From: Selaginella moellendorffii
Taxonomy: Eukaryota > Plantae > Lycopodiophyta
NCBI RefSeq assembly: GCF_000143415.4
Contig: NW_003314371.1
Coordinates: 327,380-391,379, forward strand
DNA length: 64,000 bases
Direction of reading: 5' to 3'
The notes under the pieces are model-generated. The model worked only from the letters and a program-made list of their open reading frames with translations, did not search any database and had not been told where the DNA came from. Made by a program: the position numbers and the translations under genes. Positions 19,652 through 29,019 of this stretch are shown here, in pieces. How positions within the stretch are numbered: position 1 is the first letter of the stretch; each line of letters begins with the position of its first letter.

Positions 19652-20527
19652 CTATAAGGTATAGCTATTCTCGCTTGGAACACCAAACGTTATTCTGTTG
19701 GCGAGCTTTCTCAAGTTGGTCATCTTATATTTTTCCTTGGTCTTGCGAAGCCTCCTCCCGCCGCGTTTCTTCTTTGATTCTCCAACCCGGGGAACTGGCA
19801 AGGGCGTGGCGGACTTTAGAAGTGGCCGCTCTTGCCACTTGTTGATCGTCTTAAGTATCTCCTCGCGTAGAGCTCTCCCAATCTCGCCACCTTTAGTGCT
19901 GTTGATCGTCGTGGTAGCATCCACACGAGCTGCTAATGCTGCCTTTGAGCAAACGAGGCGACACGCCCTGTTTCGAAGCGGCGGTGGCGTGGACTGTACA
20001 ATCTCACACTCGAAAACATGCCCCATCCCATTGTTCTTCACCGTCGCTGATGAGAATCCTAATAGATCGTCGATCTCCTCCCTGCCTAGAAGCTTTACGT
20101 TGCATGCCGGCATGCTAGCCAGCGACACGAGCCCGCCAGCTTCTTCGATGAGCTTTGCGGTTATGGAGCTCCCCAGAATGGCTGACAAGTTTGGAGCGGC
20201 AGAGCTCGTCTCGCTCTCCAAGAACCCTAAAACCTCCTTTCTTGTCTCCGTGAGCTCGATAATCCTATCGCATGCATCTAACACGCGCTGCAAATCAGAG
20301 TCCTCCAGTGTTGGCATGTCCATTGTCGAGAAGAGCATCGAAATCGCCAGCGCTGTTGGAGCTGGAAGATCTTCCAGACTAACTTCACTAAGATCCATCT
20401 TGTTCCCAATCTTTTTCACTAGCCGCGCATAATCTAATGGATCCCTCACCATTAACTCTAGTTCTTTGAACCTCCTCCCGTACATAGTTTTCACGAAATC
20501 ATACAAGCTTTCAATCTCCTTCTCCAT
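19652..20527 (-). CDS. Divergent, N- and C-truncated PRP31-like Nop-domain protein, intronless
   Basis: RFKELE, APNLSAILGSSITAKL...MPACNVKLLG, AALAARVD and the PRP31-specific KKKRGGRRLRKTKEKY...LRKLANRITFG; about 290 aa from ATG 20527. Confidence 0.85.
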   Translation of the reverse strand: MEKEIESLYDFVKTMYGRRFKELELMVRDPLDYARLVKKIGNKMDLSEVSLEDLPAPTALAISMLFSTMDMPTLEDSDLQRVLDACDRIIELTETRKEVLGFLESETSSAAPNLSAILGSSITAKLIEEAGGLVSLASMPACNVKLLGREEIDDLLGFSSATVKNNGMGHVFECEIVQSTPPPLRNRACRLVCSKAALAARVDATTTINSTKGGEIGRALREEILKTINKWQERPLLKSATPLPVPRVGESKKKRGGRRLRKTKEKYKMTNLRKLANRITFGVPSENSYTL

Positions 20528-20710
20528 TCTGATTTGCCCTAAGTCCAATCCTTCAATTTATAGTACTACTACAAAAGGTATACAAAACTAATTACAATCC
20601 TTTATTTTCCTGTATTGTTTAATGAAAACCCCTAAAACCCTCGCATAGCTGCCACGTCATACGAAGATGGAGTGGCATTCCAGTTTCTAGGTTGAGGAGG
20701 AGCGGCCGCG

Positions 20711-23700
20711 ATGGATCAGCGCCCCGCCAGTACGTCTTTCTCTCCCTTTCTCGCGTCGCAGCTCTTCCTCCTCTCGATCGAGCGCCATTTCCGAGCTGAT
20801 CGCCAGGAGGATGAGAAATGCCAGATCTTTCTTCTTTTTTCGTTTCCTCTTCGCGATCGAAGCTAACGTCGTTCTTCTCCAGCGGTGCCGGCGTCATCGC
20901 TCTCGGAGATACGCTTTGGATTGCTGTCCCCGGCGGATATTGTGAGTTTCAAGCGCTTTGTTTTTTTTTTTTCTCCCTCTGACTCTTCCTCTCCTCGTTG
21001 TGTTCCAGGTCAGTCTCTCCGTTCGCTCTATCAGCAAGCCTGCCGATGTTAGCGATCCCTGCCTCGGACTTCCTTGCATTCGTGGGAGCAAGTGTTTATC
21101 GTGTGGAGCCAATGAGCCAAAGGAATGCCCGGGTAGGCATTCTTTTCATGTTTTCTTTTCTCTGTTCCTTCTTTGTCTAACTGGATCCTTCTTCCAGGCC
21201 ATTTTGGTCGCTTGGAGCTCTTAACCCCGGTCTACCACCCAGAGCATTTGCGAAAGCTTTGCAAGGTTCTGGGGATGGTTTGCTTGAAATGTGGCAAACC
21301 GAGGAAAAAGCCTGGGAGGAAAGAGGAAGAAGTGGACGTAAAGGAAGAGAAAGACGAAGAGGATGAAGCGAAGCAACAAGAACAGACGGCAGCTGAGAAG
21401 GGAAAAGCTATAGTGAAACATAGCTCGTGTCCCGCTGAAGAAAAGCAACAAGAACAGACGGCAGCTGAGAAGGGAAAAGCCATAGTGAAACATAGCTCGT
21501 GTCCCGCGGGGATCAACGATCCGACTATTTCCTACTTCACCATATCCGATAGCGAGGACGAAGGGCTTTTCATTGTGGACATAATGGCTGAAGATGCCAA
21601 AAAGGTACTTTCAACTGACCTGCATTCCTTGTTCACTGTAACGTAACATCTTTACAGGCCCGCTGCGAGTTTTGTGATGGAAGCTACAAATATCCCAACG
21701 TTAGAGTCCTTTCAATGAAGTTCCAGAAGTATCGGATTGAAGGAATTCGTTTGGAGTGTCCAGGCACAAAACCTCCTCCGAATGGGTACTGGAACTTTCT
21801 CGGAGGAGCTTTGAAGGGACGTCGGAAAGTGAAACTGACTCCCATTCAGGCAAGTTTGCTGTGATTATTTCTAGTCGTTTATGTTACTGTTATTAACTGT
21901 GGAAACTCTAGGCACTATCAATCCTGAAAAAGGTCCCAGCGAGGGTCTTACCCGGCGTAGATGTTGAGGCGTTCGTGCTGGAAAAGCTTCCAGTTCCTCC
22001 AAACTGCATGCAGTCTTTACTAGACGTGAGTAGTTCCTCTATTCGTCTTTCTTGTGTTTGCAATTAACAAAGCAACAGCCGAGGACTGGAAACGTCTCAT
22101 TTTCAAGCAGTGGAGCGATTCAGACACTGCGGAAGCTCGTGATGGAGAATGCAAAGTTCGTTGACAGCTCGCCGAAAGCTTTGAAGACAAAATGGAAGAC
22201 CCTGCAACACCTCATCTCGCAGTATCTGCGCCTGAAAGGCTGCCCAAAGGTATTCTTCTTGTGTATTTTATCCGTTGACACTATTCGCTGATAAACTTTG
22301 ATCTTTACAGATACGTAATAATCTCGAGCCTTCGACGAGGCCAGGAGTGACTGTGAAATGCGCCGAAATCTGGAAGAATAACGTGACTGACACTATCTTG
22401 TCGAAGATGACACAGTACTGTGCCATTGCGCTGCTCACTGGCGACGCTTACCTTGGTGTAGAGGAGATTCTCATCCCGGATGAGATATCTAGGCAGGTGA
22501 CGCTGCCAGAACGAGTGACATCCTTCAACGCTGACAAGCTTCAAGCAATTGTCAACGACTTACAGGTATGCTTAGCATGTTTGTATTGTTTTGGATTCGA
22601 TTTTCGTGAGTACCAGGTCGGTTTCATCGAGCAAAACGGCGTCACTTGTGACCTGCGAGGCCAGTCCGCTGAGAGAAGGCAGTTGGAGATTGGAGCTGTC
22701 GTTCATCGCCCTGTGCGGGATGGGGATCTTGTTTTCGTGAGCCGGCACCCGGCGGTTTACAAACACTCAGTCATAGCGCTTACTGCAAGGATCCATCCCG
22801 GGAAGTCTTTCAGAATCAACCCTTTGGTGTGCTCTCCTCTCAAAGGAGACTTTGATGGAGACCGGCTGCACGTTTACTTCCCGCAGGCCGAGGACGCAAG
22901 AGTGGAGACGAGAGAACTGATGGGACTGAAGCAACAGTTTCAGGCGTTATCAAGCGGAAATCCGGTGATAAGTTTGACGCAAGACATGCTAGTTGCAGCG
23001 TACATGCTGGTTTCGAGGCACAGTTTCTTTACAGCTCCACAAATACAGCAGCTGGGTCTTCACGCTGATCGGTGGTCGCTACCAGATCCAGCGATTGTCA
23101 AGCCACGGGCGCTGTGGACAGGTTTCCAGGCATTTGGACTGTTACTGCCTTCGGAGTTGGCATTCTCCACGAGGACGGGAGTCTTGATTTCCGACGGGGA
23201 GCTTGTTACTGCCGGTGACGATGGTAGCTGGCTGGGAGGGGGGACCGACTCTTTGTTACGTGCTATCCACGAGAAGTTTGGCGTTGCAGAAGCAATCGCG
23301 TACCTTGATTCCTGTTGCTCGATGTTGAAAGAGTTCCTACATATCGAAGGCTTCAGCATTGGCTTGGGAGACTTCAGCGTCAGCGACAGGCAGAGAGAAG
23401 CGATTTCGGAGCTTCTGGCGTATGCTAAAGAAAATTACGTGGAGGAGCAGGACTTCAGGGACGTTGAGCGGTGCCTAGAAGTTAAGATAAAGAACGAGAC
23501 GACGAAAGAGAACAGACTGCATATGATGATGAAAGCAGGCAGCAAAGGGTCCGCGTCTTCGGCGAGAATTCACGTCGCCTGTTTAGGCGTCCAGGTTGTT
23601 CACGGTCGCTCGGAATTCATCGACAAGTCGTTTTGGAGTGGATTAGACCCGTCAGAGTTTTGGCAACACAGCGTGTGTACCCGAGCTACACTCTTGAAGT

Positions 23701-26700
23701 CATTGACGATGCACGACGCGGGGACGCTGGCATCGACCCTGATGAATCATCTGGAAGACGTGTATCTTGCCTACGATGGCACGGTTCGTCACCGACAGAA
23801 TGAGCAAGTCGTTCAACTGGACTATGGCAATGAGTCGGCTCAACCGGGTGAAGCCGTAGGGGCCCTTGCAGCGAGCTTCATTACGGAGCAAGCTTACGAC
23901 ACTGCATACGAGGATTTCAAGGTATAGAATTTTTTTGGACATTCATGTCCAGAGACTGAGCTTTTGGAATTTTATCACCAGAAAACGCTGCAGTCAAGTG
24001 TTAACGAGGACAACGTTACGATTTTAAGACTGGAAAGGTGTGGCATCAACAACTGCCACTGTTTGGAGTGGAGATTGTTGGAGCTCAAGGAACAGCTACA
24101 ACCAGTTCACTTGAAGGAGATCACGAAGGAGGTGAAACTTGAGTATGCACCGACCATCGTGACTTATTGGCTTTGCCATTTCTCTCTGGACCTGGTACTT
24201 TTTACTCTTTCTTTGAGCGTCTCTCGAAGTGCCGGTGTTTGGCAGGAGCGTGTCGAGGAGCTAAATTTGAATCTAGAATCCATTCGGCAGTTGATTCTAG
24301 GCCTCGATTTTTGCTGTGAAACTGTTCTGTCCTGTGGCAATGAAGAAGCGTGCTTGCACGTTGCAGCAGCAGCTGACGGTGATGACATGGAAGACTCCTT
24401 GAACGTCTGGAACTACAAGCTCATACCGAAGCTCTTGGAGGTCTACGTTGCAGGTGATATACCAAATGTTTTGCTACCACGTTACAGATTTTCTGTGTGT
24501 TCAGGCAGCAAAGATGTTCAGTCCGTCACTGTCACTCGTGACTATCGTCAAGAATTAGTTCTACAACTAGCTGCCTCGTTTCAAACACTGGCAGGACTCG
24601 GCCTGGACACTGTAGATTGGCAGCGATCTTCTCCATTCACTGTTCGGGAAGTATACGATACGTTTGGTGTTGAAGCAGCTTGTCAGTTTATCTATGAGGT
24701 GAGCTGATTATAATCTATTTTTCAAATACTTGTCCTTACGCTTAGCAATCATGTAGAGGCTGATGACCATCACGAGCTCGGATGTTAATCCCAGCCATGT
24801 TCGTCTTCTTGCGGATTATGCAACGCATACTGGAAATGTGCTTGGCTATACAAATTCAGGTTTTAAGGAATTTCTCAAGAGTACAGGCTCGTTGGCACCA
24901 TTTCAACGTGTAACCACAATTTATACTTGTTTTTCTTCGTCTCTAACACTTGGCGAACAGGTTGCGGTGAATGAACTTGAAGCCGCCGCACAAAATGGTC
25001 TCTGTGATCGTTTAAAAGGCGTGGTTTCGTCTACGGCTTGGGGAAAGCGTCCACCGATTGGAACATCCACAGACTTCAAACTTGTTTGGAAGGTAGGCAA
25101 GTTCGTCATCAAGCTCGTCATTTGACATTTGTTTCTGAAGATGGATGATCCGAGCTGGGTCAACGTAGACCTTTACAAGTTCCTTGAAGGAAATGTATGC
25201 AAGCAGCCGCTCACACCAGCCATTGCCGAAGGCCGTAAAATGCTAAACAGTGAATGGGAGTCGCAGCCGCAGGGAACAACAGAAACTAATGGCTGGGACG
25301 TGCCATCAACAACTGAGAACCTGGACAGTGGATGGGGATTGTTAACCACGACAGCGGACGTTGACAATGGCTGGGGATCGTCAACCGCGACAGCCGACGT
25401 TGACAATGGCTGGGGGTCTTTGACGACAACTGATATTGGGGGAAGTGACTGGGGATCATTAGCGACTGACACTGTCAAGAATGCGACGTCGACTGTTAAT
25501 GCCGACAATGGCTGGGAGGCACCAAATTCCGGTAACTCTCCTCATTATTGTTCTTCATAAAGTTTGAACAAACGCGCTTGCTTGAACTTAGGTGCGGATC
25601 AAGGCAATGGCTGGGAAACATCACGTTCAGGTAAATGTTTTCTCAATCTTTTAGAAAATTCAAACGAATCTACTTCTTCGAACTTAGGTGTGGATCCAGG
25701 CAATGGCTGGGGAGCATCATGTTCAGGTAAACACCATTCATGGTTATTCATGTTAGAATATTGAACGAATGCATTCGTTTGAACTTCAGATGCGGAAGTT
25801 CAAACTGGCTGGGCGTCAATTCCCACTGATCGTCCGGATGTAGCTGAAGGCGAAGAAGTCTCCTGGAATACGGCCTTCAAGGATGACTCCAAGTTGGAAG
25901 AGCAGAGATCAAAAAGATCATTTGCTCCTCTTGGTTGCAGAAGGATTCCGAATCCCCATCTCTCAGGTTTCGTCTGATGCGTGATTTTGAGTTCAAATTA
26001 TTTTTTCTTGTTTTCAGAGGTATGCAACGATGGCTGGTCGTCGGAACCTGCGAACAAGGATGAGGGAGGTGGTTGGGGACAAAGCTCGGGTACAACTTCC
26101 ATGGTATCAAAGGAATATAGACTGCAACAATGTTTTTGATTGTTTCAGAAGTGATCAATGGAAGTACCTGGGATTCAACCAGTTTTGACGCTCCTGCTCC
26201 TGCTGCTCAAGGTCGTGACAGCAGCGACTGGCTACGAAATGACGACCTGGAGCTGCAAGAAGAAAGACCCAAGCGTAAGTTTGCTCCTACAGGAGCAAAC
26301 ACGATTCCTCTTGGCAAAAGAAGAGTTTTTCCAAAACTTGGCGTTGACAGTGCCAAACAGGACTCAGGTTAGTTTTCTTATTCTTCTACACTTTCGACGG
26401 TTTCTCCAACATTTTTCTCCAGGCACCGATGCCAAAGATGTGGAAAATAACGAGGAAAAGAACGTAGACCACGGCTGGACAAACTCCGGTTAGTTTATTG
26501 CGTATATTGAAATAATATTGATGTTAAATTGACTTGGTTCTCTCGAAGGCTGGAGCCCTGTGAAGAACGACGACCAAGTAACGGTTGCGGCTGACATTCA
26601 AGTTGACGGCTGGGGAGCAGCTCCAAACTCAGGTCAGACTTCTATTCAAGATGACGGCTGGGCAGCTGCTCCAAACTCAGGTCAGCCTGCTCTTCAAGAT

Positions 26701-27510
26701 GACGGCTGGGGAGCAGCTCCAAACTCAGGTCAGCCTTCTACTCAAGATGACGGCTGGGGAGCAGCTCCTAGCTCAAGTCAGTTTTCTACTCAAGATGACG
26801 GCTGGGGAGCAGCTCCTAACTCAGGTCAGCCTTCTATTCGTCTGATTTAGTCTTGTTCTTATGAAGCTGTTTGCGAAGGTGTGACGAGCAACGACGAAGA
26901 AGCCGTGCAAGCTCAGGGCTGGGGATGTAGTGCACCACAAGAAGTCGAAGGTGCTCCAAAGACTAGCGCATTGCACCCCCGGGACCGTCCCCCTCCGGAT
27001 CCCTTTAAAAGAAAGTTCTGGATGGAGGTGGTGGAGGTCGTGAATCAAGCCAGAATTGTGCTGAGAAGGTAAGGAAAAACGCTCAATTCATCCATGGTGT
27101 TCTTATCTGCTCGAGCGTTCTCTCCAGTTACCGAAACGGCGATCGACTTTCCGAGGAGCACGAGACGGCCATCATGGAGAAAATTCTCGTCCATCACCCC
27201 TCCTACGACCAGAAAGCTGGAGCTGGTATCGATTTCTTGAAGGTAGAGTGACTCTCTCTCTGGATTGTGTCTGAACTTTAGACGCTATGTCTCCTCTCAG
27301 GTCGATCGCCCAGCGAATTTCTCCGACTCGAGCTGCTTCTTCGTCGTCCGGAAAGACGGCAGCGAGGACGACTTCTCGTACCACAAGTGCCTGCGATCGC
27401 TGGTCGAGAAGAGCTTCCCAGAGAACTATCTCGCCAAGTATGACGCATCGTGCCTTCCCAAGGACTGGATCAAGAAAGTGGACGATTCAAGTGGAGACAA
27501 TGCAAGTTAA
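20711..27510 (+). CDS. NRPE1: RNA polymerase V largest subunit-like (WG/GW CTD plus DeCL domain), many exons
   Basis: EIRFGLLS, CLSCG...CPGHFG, metal-A site DFDGD (22848-22862), MKAGSKG, YDGTVR joined almost directly to PGEAVG (Pol IV/V foot deletion), and WGKRPPIGT. Followed by a GW-rich CTD and a C-terminal DeCL/DUF3223 (HHPSY...SCFFVVRKDGSEDDFSYHKC). Confidence 0.9.
21371..21507 (+). repeat. 72-bp coding tandem duplication (KQQEQTAAEKGKAIVKHSSCPA x2) in NRPE1
   Basis: Units start at 21371 and 21443. Confidence 0.9.
26605..26838 (+). repeat. Five 48-bp tandem units encoding DGWGAAPNSGQxxxQD (AGO-hook repeats)
   Basis: Units start at 26605, 26653, 26701, 26749 and 26797. Confidence 0.95.
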
Positions 27511-27558
27511 GTTCTGAGACAATGCAAGTAAGTTTCGAGACAATGCAAGTTAAGTTCT
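27494..27558 (+). repeat. Triple ~22-bp tandem repeat spanning the NRPE1 stop codon
   Basis: GAGACAATGCAAGT(T)AAGTT at 27494, 27516 and 27537. Confidence 0.9.
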
Positions 27559-27600
27559 ATCTTTGCTATATCACCTCCTAGAGAGAAACGCGAGATCTCT

Positions 27601-28668
27601 TTAGAAGTAGAGGAAGCACAGGATCATGACACCGCCGACGAACAAGAGCAGCCGGGAGAGCAGCGTTTCCTGCTGGTCCGGGCGGAGCGGCGGCGGCAGG
27701 GCCCTCAGCTGGTGGTGGTGGTGGTGGTGGTAGCTGGCCGGCGGCGGCGGCGGCGTGTGCAAGCCTCCATACGGCAGCATGGCCGGCCCGGGTGGCGGCG
27801 CATCGGGGAAGCCATGGAACTGGAGCCGGAAGAGCGATGGAAACAATCCAAATCCCGCGGAGAAAGTCACGTTGCCGAATCGCGCCGACGCTCCCGGCCC
27901 CGCGGCAGCTCCAGCCACGAAACCAATGCCGTATGGATCGTAGAGGCGGCGGGCGTGGTGGTGCCAGGCCGCGAGGCTGGCCTGGTGGTGGGGGTCCGAG
28001 GAGGAGCCCGACCTCTGGCCGGGGGGCCGAGATGGGATCTCCATCTCGGGCACCGAGCTGGTGGCGTGGTCGCGGTGGTCGGAGGAGGACTCCACGCAGC
28101 CTCGGCCATAGAGGGGGATGACTTTGTCCTCGTGGACGGGGGCCTTGCAAACCGGGCACTCCTTGCAGATGGATCGCAGCTGCGTCCACTTGTAGAGGCA
28201 GGGCCAGCAGAAGAGGTGGCCGCAGAGGGTGACGACGGGATCTTGCGCGAGCTCCAGGCAGATGTTGCAGTCGAAGCTCCCGGCGGCTTGGTCGCGATCG
28301 TCGCCCTCGTCGTCCTCGTCGTCTCCATCGTCGCAATCGCGATCGCGGTCGAGGGTGGTGGAAGCTGTTTTGCTGCTGGCTGGAGGAGGAGGAGGAGGAG
28401 GCTTGGTTCTTGATCCACCCGAGGTTCCCGGATGATCGTCGAGGCCTGAGTGATCAGCTCTTACTTGGGCATTGCCTTGTGGATCTTCTTCTTCTTCTTC
28501 CTCGCGATCGTGTTCCACTTCGTCGTCTCGAGCGCGTAGCTCCGCCTGGGACTCACCTGGCTTTGGGCGATCGCGAAGCTCTCCCGATCGATTGGAGGAA
28601 GAACTGGAATTGGACACCGCAGTGCTGCTGCCGCTCGCGTCCTCTGCTCCGGCGGGACTGTTCGTCAT
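27601..28668 (-). CDS. RNF5/RMA-like C3HC4 RING E3 ligase with C-terminal membrane anchor, intronless
   Basis: FDCNICLELAQDPVVTLCGHLFCWPCLYKW...CPVCKA...VIPLYGRG, IPSRP and a hydrophobic C-terminus. Confidence 0.95.
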   Translation of the reverse strand: MTNSPAGAEDASGSSTAVSNSSSSSNRSGELRDRPKPGESQAELRARDDEVEHDREEEEEEDPQGNAQVRADHSGLDDHPGTSGGSRTKPPPPPPPASSKTASTTLDRDRDCDDGDDEDDEGDDRDQAAGSFDCNICLELAQDPVVTLCGHLFCWPCLYKWTQLRSICKECPVCKAPVHEDKVIPLYGRGCVESSSDHRDHATSSVPEMEIPSRPPGQRSGSSSDPHHQASLAAWHHHARRLYDPYGIGFVAGAAAGPGASARFGNVTFSAGFGLFPSLFRLQFHGFPDAPPPGPAMLPYGGLHTPPPPPASYHHHHHHQLRALPPPLRPDQQETLLSRLLLFVGGVMILCFLYF

Positions 28669-29019
28669 CGTCGCCCGCCGCCGCTACCATCGCTAGAGCT
28701 TCTCGTCCTCTTCCATCGCCACGGCATTCTATCCTTCTTTTTTCTTCTTCCTCGTAGATTTTTTTTTTCTTTGCCCCTTCAGCACAAACAGACGCATTTG
28801 ACTGGCACGTCAGCGCTTGACTTCGCGGCGGTTGACCGTGCAATACCGTTTATTTTGTCCAAATTACAGGCATTTCGAATATGCCCCTGGAGAGAGAGAA
28901 GGTAGCAATTAGGGTTCATGGTTCTCGCCCAGTGGCTCGCGATGGTGCTAGGTCGCGGGCCAGCGCCAAAGCGCCGATCGACCAGGTGATTCTGTGAAAG
29001 GTCGCGGCTTGGCAGGGCG

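Follow-up and report, generated by a model that had tools for sequence, protein, structure and literature searches.

A minisatellite across a 5′ splice site and the Argonaute-hook platform of a Selaginella Pol V subunit

How is the number of Argonaute hooks in a protein set when every hook-encoding repeat unit of its gene also carries a splice donor? The question is raised by a tandem array in the gene for the largest subunit of RNA polymerase V (Pol V) of Selaginella moellendorffii, found in a 64-kb stretch of genomic DNA (the window, from whose first base all positions are counted) on scaffold GL377675.1 of assembly GCA_000143415.2. Each 48-bp unit of the array encodes one Gly-Trp (GW) hook and contains a copy, intact or degraded, of one 5′ splice site, which an earlier reading, here called the original prediction, took to mean that the five in-frame donors are used alternatively, perhaps by tissue, giving one to five hooks from the array and a graded recruitment of Argonaute. 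Our analysis led us to a different reading, to which we give a probability of roughly three in four: the array is a minisatellite, probably young and polymorphic in copy number, lying across the 5′ splice site of intron 21, in which the end of an exon and the start of an intron were duplicated together and the last donor is the one used.

A hook array that runs into an intron

The host gene of the array is annotated as “DNA-directed RNA polymerase V subunit 1” (XP_002990624.2), and when this protein (P0152, 1796 amino acids) was mapped onto the window, its 24 coding exons at 20711-27510 gave a translation that was 100% identical, with zero differences. Pfam RNA_pol_Rpb1 domains 2-5 were found in a large exon (22347-23927; E-values from 3.5e-29 to 8.9e-08), the open reading frame of which also holds the metal-binding DFDGD motif (as GDFDGDRLH), while Rpb1 domain 1 was recorded for the gene product and a DeCL domain at the C-terminal end (DUF3223, PF11523, E 1.3e-11) was located at 27301-27507. 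Between the catalytic part and the DeCL domain, a C-terminal region of 597 amino acids contains 18 GW and 11 WG motifs. A GW/WG-rich platform in this position is absent from NRPD1. Judged from its predicted domains, the content of the gene (Rpb1 domains, GW platform and DeCL tail) fits NRPE1, and the original prediction's identification of a Pol V largest-subunit gene was upheld. The best distant matches of the C-terminal part were Marchantia MpNRPE1a together with unnamed liverwort and lycophyte proteins; whether lycophyte genes of this kind are true NRPE1 genes or resemble an NRPD1/E1-like ancestor is a matter on which the literature disagrees (PMC4476159 versus PMC5569507).

Within this region, Tandem Repeats Finder (TRF) identified a repeat with a period of 48 bp, 5.1 copies, 89% matches and a score of 390 at 26596-26839, which supplies five of the 18 GW motifs of the C-terminal domain. 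The units U1 to U5 (codon starts at 26302+3k) translate as IQVDGWGAAPNSGQTS, IQDDGWAAAPNSGQPA, LQDDGWGAAPNSGQPS, TQDDGWGAAPSSSQFS and TQDDGWGAAPNSG, with one GW hook encoded by each, and in-frame read-through of the array stops at a TAG codon at 26848-26850. The motif CTCARGTCAG occurs five times in the window (26628, 26676, 26724, 26772 and 26820), exactly 48 nucleotides (nt) apart, as compared with an expectation of 0.45 by shuffling, and five occurrences were reached in 0 of 100 shuffles. With a slash marking the splice border, the units carry CTCAG/GTCAG, except for unit 4, which has CTCAA/GTCAG. The GT dinucleotides of the donors thus stand at 26633, 26681, 26729, 26777 (preceded by CAA) and 26825, and the acceptor, GCGAAG/G, ends after 26878. 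The five GW units, the stop at 26850, the acceptor at about 26878 and the five donor positions had all been predicted, and every detail that could be checked proved correct.

The splice phase was computed from the gene model. Exon base 26824 takes the first position of a codon (phase 1) and combines with the GT at 26879-26880 into a GGT codon. Because this phase-1 join recurs at a spacing of 48 nt, all five donor copies would splice in frame, as had been claimed, and the possible joins to exon 22 read CCTAACTCAG+GTGTGACGAG from U5, CCAAACTCAG+GTGTGACGAG from U1-U3 and CCTAGCTCAA+GTGTGACGAG from U4.

Use of the last donor in RNA

Reads from three raw RNA runs of 2026 (X21, X22 and X23) and the contigs of one older run (X1) were placed on positions 25000-27700; about 12% of each raw run was read, which gave a depth of 1-4x. 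This revealed 12 GT..AG junctions with introns of 48-63 nt, all of them consistent with the RefSeq model. The sole junction into the acceptor after 26878 was 26824/26879, present in four reads from the three runs (one in X21, one in X22 and two in X23) and in an X1 contig of depth 13.6. This contig starts at about 26789, as calculated from coordinates, where U5 stops sharing a 31-mer with U4, and its upstream flank is therefore U5-specific. A second X1 contig, which matches 26608-26729 without a mismatch, runs past the donor copies of both U1 and U2, and its last base is the first of the copy in U3. The last donor is also the one used in both RefSeq proteins.

No junction from an upstream donor to 26879 was seen in the three raw runs, the X1 contigs or both RefSeq models at this depth, and no isoform with fewer hooks was present in the 90% cluster of two RefSeq proteins. 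When other unit-to-exon joins were sought in a collection of 5.8 billion proteins, the 62-amino-acid downstream exon gave 0 candidates, and residues 1599-1796 of P0152 gave 158 candidates in the same collection, 0 of them significant. Moreover, RNA reads covered the array continuously, at a depth in the raw runs similar to that of neighbouring exons, and 0.74-0.90 of sampled array 31-mers were present in RNA contigs that came from five runs of two studies, compared with 0.41-0.55 for 2.6 kb of sequence that includes introns; a 31-mer search of this type shows the presence of array words in RNA, spliced isoforms not being detectable by it. Taken together, these data show that the dominant mRNA retains all units, and they exclude major use of the upstream donors, use at a few percent lying below detection at 1-4x. 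The alternative donor choice that was to yield isoforms with one to five hooks was thus not borne out: junction reads at the acceptor, the very check proposed for it, joined only unit 5 (four reads in three runs, one contig and both RefSeq models), albeit at low depth. As a separate observation, RNA run X7, which is labelled as a second organism, contained 0.21 of the words sampled from 25000-27600 and 0.42 of those from the array, and may come from a close relative or a mislabelled sample with a near-identical array.

Why should the last copy be chosen? A position weight matrix was built from the gene's other 23 donors and each donor was scored leave-one-out. The used site, CAG/GTCAGC, ranked 14 of 24, and among exonic GT sites in the 5.4-kb coding sequence only five scored as high, two of these being the U2 and U3 copies. 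Since U2 and U3 share the 9-mer and the score of the used site, donor strength was rejected as the cause of the choice, and because the site sequence is equal in U2, U3 and U5, context and distance would have to decide. In the 48 nt after the donor, the T fraction lies at 0.29-0.56 across the 23 coding introns (0.48 at the used donor) but at 0.19-0.25 behind the four upstream copies, which is below every coding intron of the gene; over the whole intron at 26825-26878 it is 0.43. Furthermore, 22 of the 23 coding introns, and the intron in the 3′ untranslated region (3′UTR) as well, measure 48-67 nt, whereas introns that began at the upstream copies would measure 102, 150, 198 and 246 nt. The last donor would then win as the only one followed by a short (54 nt), T-rich stretch typical of the gene's introns, the upstream copies being followed by T-poor, exon-like sequence and defining introns two to five times the usual length. 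Short introns are recognised as units (intron definition), plant splicing depends on U-rich intron sequence, and when identical 5′ splice sites compete the site nearest the 3′ site is preferred. The choice made here fits all three.

How probable is it that the upstream donors, chiefly U2 and U3, are nevertheless used meaningfully in some tissue, at some stage or under some stress, giving stable in-frame Pol V isoforms that lack two to four hooks? We consider this quite unlikely, and the tissue-dependent choice among all five donors no less improbable. Every donor is in frame, U2 and U3 carry the used donor's 9-mer and are among the strongest exonic decoys of the gene, none of the products would be subject to nonsense-mediated decay, and one 153-nt intron exists; but an upstream donor appears in no junction, contig or RefSeq model seen, no protein fragments with other joins were found, the inner units are kept in the RNA contigs of five runs, and the upstream copies lack the T-rich context of the gene's coding introns. 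In addition, the G at position -1 of U4 is lost in both haplotypes, which would be unexpected if the donors were under selection, and the array holds only a minority of the GW motifs. If upstream donors were used, the array would set the number of Argonaute hooks both by germline copy-number change and by splicing, and splicing would, as happens rarely, control valency; nothing seen points there.

The further claim, that the strength of RNA-directed DNA methylation is tuned in this manner, is speculative, given that the array accounts for five of 18 GW motifs. In Arabidopsis, when all twelve 17-amino-acid repeats were deleted, methylation was still rescued at about 60% of Pol V loci (10.1101/111831), so that no more than a small effect would be expected from removing up to four of the 18 GW motifs; and S. 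moellendorffii shows no clear peak of 24-nt small interfering RNAs (PMC5569507).

Hook number in two haplotypes and the origin of the array

A search of a representative library returned a second protein of 1784 amino acids, 97% identical to the first (P0001, XP_024529687.1), and the 90% cluster of P0001 consists of two RefSeq proteins, XP_024529687.1 and XP_002990624.2, both named Pol V subunit 1. The second protein is encoded on scaffold GL377576.1 of the same assembly, at a locus 97.6% identical to the window over 9 kb, and both haplotypes of the plant that was sequenced are known to be present in the assembly (PMC3095285). The array has four units in GL377576.1 and five in GL377675.1, and the alignment shows one clean 48-bp gap. 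The third unit of the shorter array is an exact hybrid of units 3 and 4, identical to the first k bases of U3 followed by U4 from there on, for k = 2-29. To judge from this identity, the four-unit array would be exactly what a single slippage or unequal exchange involving units 3 and 4 yields, and the direction from five to four is the more parsimonious one because the change from four to five needs extra substitutions. Unit 4 reads CAA/GT in both haplotypes, and at least one donor copy has thus decayed without restoration.

Both alleles are transcribed, since RNA carries the bases of the other haplotype at two positions. At 26618, a C>A change (Ala to Glu in unit 1) was seen in all three reads of X23 and in none of the three of X21; at 26088, a synonymous G>A change was present in X1 and X21, where it makes the aligner shift the 26090-26148 junction. 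On these two markers, the samples may differ in the allele that they carry or express. Hook number in this gene therefore varies in the DNA, by germline copy-number change, and was not seen to vary through splicing. A change in hook number has here been caught in DNA within a single plant, and it holds a warning for isoform tests: as the alleles differ by four versus five units, the 48-bp ladder in reverse transcription PCR (RT-PCR) that had been suggested as a test for isoforms is confounded.

The same comparison bears on two other ways of accounting for the array. Single units could be spliced out of RNA as mini-introns of 48 nt, each beginning at the GT of a unit and closing with the CTCAG of the unit after it, which would leave fewer hooks in frame. 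GT..AG pairs do lie exactly 48 nt apart, and the shortest real intron of the gene is 48 nt long; however, no 48-nt skip inside the array was found among the listed joints or deletions, the candidate stretches have T fractions of 0.19-0.25, by eye they show no pyrimidine tract and only a branch-like CTAAC about 7 nt from the AG, and the RefSeq proteins differ by one unit already at the DNA level. We regard such mini-introns as very improbable. It is still harder to believe that the array or its copy number is an artefact of assembly. Although assemblers can collapse or expand tandem repeats, and the haplotype scaffolds do differ by one unit, the array is only 244 bp long, with the distinguishing substitutions of its units in a fixed order, and the RNA contig is exact at 26608-26729, including the U3-specific CCAAACTCAG that is absent from the four-unit haplotype; RNA reads run continuously over the array, and with the other haplotype's A at 26618 in X23, both alleles are found in RNA. 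Mis-assembly was rejected on the fixed order of the unit substitutions and the exact RNA contig.

How could such an array have formed? Beyond the used donor, the last unit remains identical to the others over 15 nt (GTCAGCCTTCT followed by ATTC), after which the similarity ends. Identity thus runs 15 nt into the 54-nt intron, in support of the proposed origin, in which an exon end was duplicated along with an intron start, and the Gly-Gln-Pro-Ser of the inner units is read from former donor and intron-start bases. The duplicated 48-bp segment would have consisted of the last 37 exon nt (..DDGWGAAPNS plus G) and the first 11 intron nt (GTCAGCCTTCT), and tandem duplication would have raised it to five copies. 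In the RNA seen, the spliceosome takes only the copy nearest the acceptor and the four upstream copies are read as coding sequence, so that each duplication would have added one 16-residue GW unit, presumably able to bind Argonaute as a hook. The bases ATTC begin unit 1 and also begin the sequence after the array, a microhomology that is consistent with a microhomology-mediated first duplication.

The order of events could also have been the reverse, with an array that was at first wholly exonic and an intron that was acquired at its 3′ end afterwards, through intronisation or insertion. TCA GGT CAG is in frame as Ser-Gly-Gln and could have been coding first, and introns are known to be gained when AGGT-containing sequence is duplicated in tandem, as described for the gene of a potato RNA-dependent RNA polymerase (RdRp; PMC4974935). 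However, the other GW exons of the gene end alike, in ..(N/R/D)SG with a phase-1 split before the intron (at 25531, 25630, 26367 and 26488), and because of this shared ending the intron position looks older than the array; past its first 15 nt, moreover, the intron no longer resembles the unit at all and, like the others, is rich in T. The reverse order is therefore unlikely, and we favour duplication across a pre-existing 5′ splice site.

Several points weigh against this account. Joints were listed only when supported by three reads or by a contig, and upstream-donor junctions in one or two reads would stay hidden; by their sequence the upstream copies are strong decoys, of which some leaky use is plausible; and the 153 nt of the first intron show that longer introns are possible in this gene. 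The four bases of ATTC are not enough to establish how the first duplication came about. Finally, the relatives found for residues 1480-1796 of P0152, in a search meant to date the array, were the other haplotype and distant NRPE1-like proteins (from Riccia, Marchantia as MpNRPE1a, Diphasiastrum and Calypogeia), with no other Selaginella among them.

Two further kinds of duplication lengthened the tail of the gene. A 39-bp repeat was found by TRF inside an exon, at 25324-25415. In the case of two 39-nt GW micro-exons, the introns at 25532-25591, 25631-25687 and 25727-25789 (60, 57 and 63 nt) have in common their GAACTT(C)AG ends and a core of TTGAAC or TTCAAACG, a homology judged by eye; all three junctions are used in RNA, with no skipping listed at low depth. 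The region 25532-25789 thus looks like an exon-plus-intron module duplicated in tandem, another route by which the hook platform has grown. Duplication in the tail, as an in-exon repeat, a boundary array and an exon-plus-intron module, ignores exon borders.

Relation to known systems and the surroundings of the gene

The Argonaute-binding (GW/WG) repeat platform of plant NRPE1 was reportedly described by El-Shami et al. in 2007. Such platforms evolve by repeat expansion and rapid turnover (Huang et al. 2015, PMC4476159; PMC6188566), and PMC6188566 cites Trujillo et al. 2016 on this turnover. Like them, the Selaginella gene has disordered GW-rich repeats between an Rpb1-like catalytic part and DeCL, with lineage-specific units subject to recurrent expansion, 16 amino acids long here and 17 in Arabidopsis. 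That the gene and its GW platform are annotated, and that NRPE1 tails turn over their repeats, is already known. Unlike in known NRPE1 platforms, the Selaginella unit takes in a 5′ splice site as well as 11-15 nt from the start of an intron, so that it is in part exonised intron with a silent donor in each inner unit, and the copy number differs, four versus five, within one sequenced plant. What is new is that a duplication straddling an exon boundary becomes protein, intron bases turning into Gly-Gln-Pro-Ser linkers with one hook gained per duplication.

In its anatomy, the closest structural analogue is the minisatellite of human F7 intron 7, in which the opposite choice is made. There, the border between exon 7 and intron 7 lies within the first copy of a 37-bp variable number tandem repeat, and the identical donors number five to nine (Borensztajn et al. 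2006, PMC1557585), of which only the most upstream is used, the repeats remaining intronic (PMC1557585). Both are polymorphic minisatellites across a 5′ splice site, with identical donors facing one acceptor, one donor used and the rest silent; in Selaginella the junction lies within the repeat unit (26596-26839 across 26825) and the copy number is polymorphic, as in a boundary minisatellite, but it is the downstream-most donor that is used and not, as in F7, the upstream-most. F7 differs further in that its repeats are non-coding, its intron is a long mammalian one, its donor choice was explained by a 5′-to-3′ scanning model and its 37-bp unit is not a multiple of three, whereas the 48-bp repeats of Selaginella are coding and lengthen the protein, next to a 54-nt intron in a short-intron plant. 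Because a plant with short introns picks the donor nearest the acceptor, the duplication was turned into protein. F7 and the Selaginella array thus form a natural pair for the study of 5′ splice-site choice in long versus short introns.

Reed and Maniatis in 1986 and Eperon et al. in 1993 reportedly described a proximity rule for duplicated 5′ splice sites in cis-competition. In such engineered duplications, as in Selaginella, the donor closest to the 3′ splice site is chosen; those were mammalian constructs and this is a natural plant case, to which the rule is applied by analogy. Globin 5′ splice-site duplication experiments are cited on this rule in PMC1557585. With intron gain of the potato RdRp type (PMC4974935), the array shares a tandem duplication that carries splice signals and creates extra GT/AG sites; unlike in that type, no new intron arose in Selaginella, the copied signals being ignored and the copied intron start translated. 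The features discussed here are collected in Table 1.

Table 1. Coordinates of the array, its splice sites and the coding exons around it
Feature	Position	Strand	Evidence
48-bp x 5.1 tandem repeat; U1-U5 start at 26596, 26644, 26692, 26740, 26788; last 15 nt intronic	26596..26839	+	TRF, unit listing
Exon 21, carrier of the hook array	26549..26824	+	RNA junctions 26488/26549 and 26824/26879
Donor copy U1 (cag/GTCAGA), unused	26633..26638	+	no RNA junction from U1 copy
Donor copy U2 (cag/GTCAGC), unused; 9-mer as in used donor	26681..26686	+	position weight matrix 6.29, equal to used donor
Donor copy U3 (cag/GTCAGC), unused; 9-mer as in used donor	26729..26734	+	position weight matrix 6.29
Donor copy U4 (caa/GTCAGT), degraded	26777..26782	+	position weight matrix 4.18
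Removed intron, 54 nt, phase 1; donor cag/GTCAGC, acceptor GCGAAG/g; contains TAG 26848-26850	26825..26878	+	RNA junctions
48 bp (one unit) missing from other haplotype; gap placeable up to 26721-26768	26694..26741	+	alignment with GL377576.1 (L001)
Two 39-nt phase-1 GW micro-exons (25592-25630, 25688-25726), 57-nt intron between	25592..25726	+	RNA junctions, gene model
Exon 22: one further GWG hook and start of DeCL-like region	26879..27068	+	RNA junctions, gene model
Exons 23-24 (intron 27243-27300 between), DeCL/DUF3223 tail, stop codon 27508-27510	27128..27510	+	PF11523; RNA junctions
Pol V largest-subunit coding region (NRPE1-like), 24 coding exons, 1796 amino acids	20711..27510	+	spliced model = P0152 = XP_002990624.2; Pfam

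Elsewhere in the gene, a GC-AG intron at 21850-21911 (cag/GCAAGT ... CTCTAG/gc) is needed for the model to match XP_002990624.2, and its donor is the sole non-GT donor among the gene's 24 introns. The N-terminal part contains a 72-bp tandem duplication at 21364-21507, which encodes (A/E)KQQEQTAAEKGKAIVKHSSCPA twice and is present in both haplotype proteins. Downstream of the stop codon (27508-27510), the 54-nt 3′UTR intron at 27528-27581 was seen in an X1 contig only.

A scan of 20000-29000 with Rfam on both strands found nothing, with no sign of an RNA gene or antisense function, and the minus-strand open reading frame at 26821-27048 is a mechanical one that is unsupported. The neighbours of the gene are equal in both haplotypes: a Nop/Prp31_C protein lies upstream (19652-20548, minus strand), a RING-finger gene is convergent downstream (27601-28668, minus strand), and a large protein with zf-CW, Chromo, SNF2 and MOM1 domains begins at about 29000 on the plus strand. 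An RNA contig reaches position 27700 or beyond, entering the 3′ end of this RING-finger gene.

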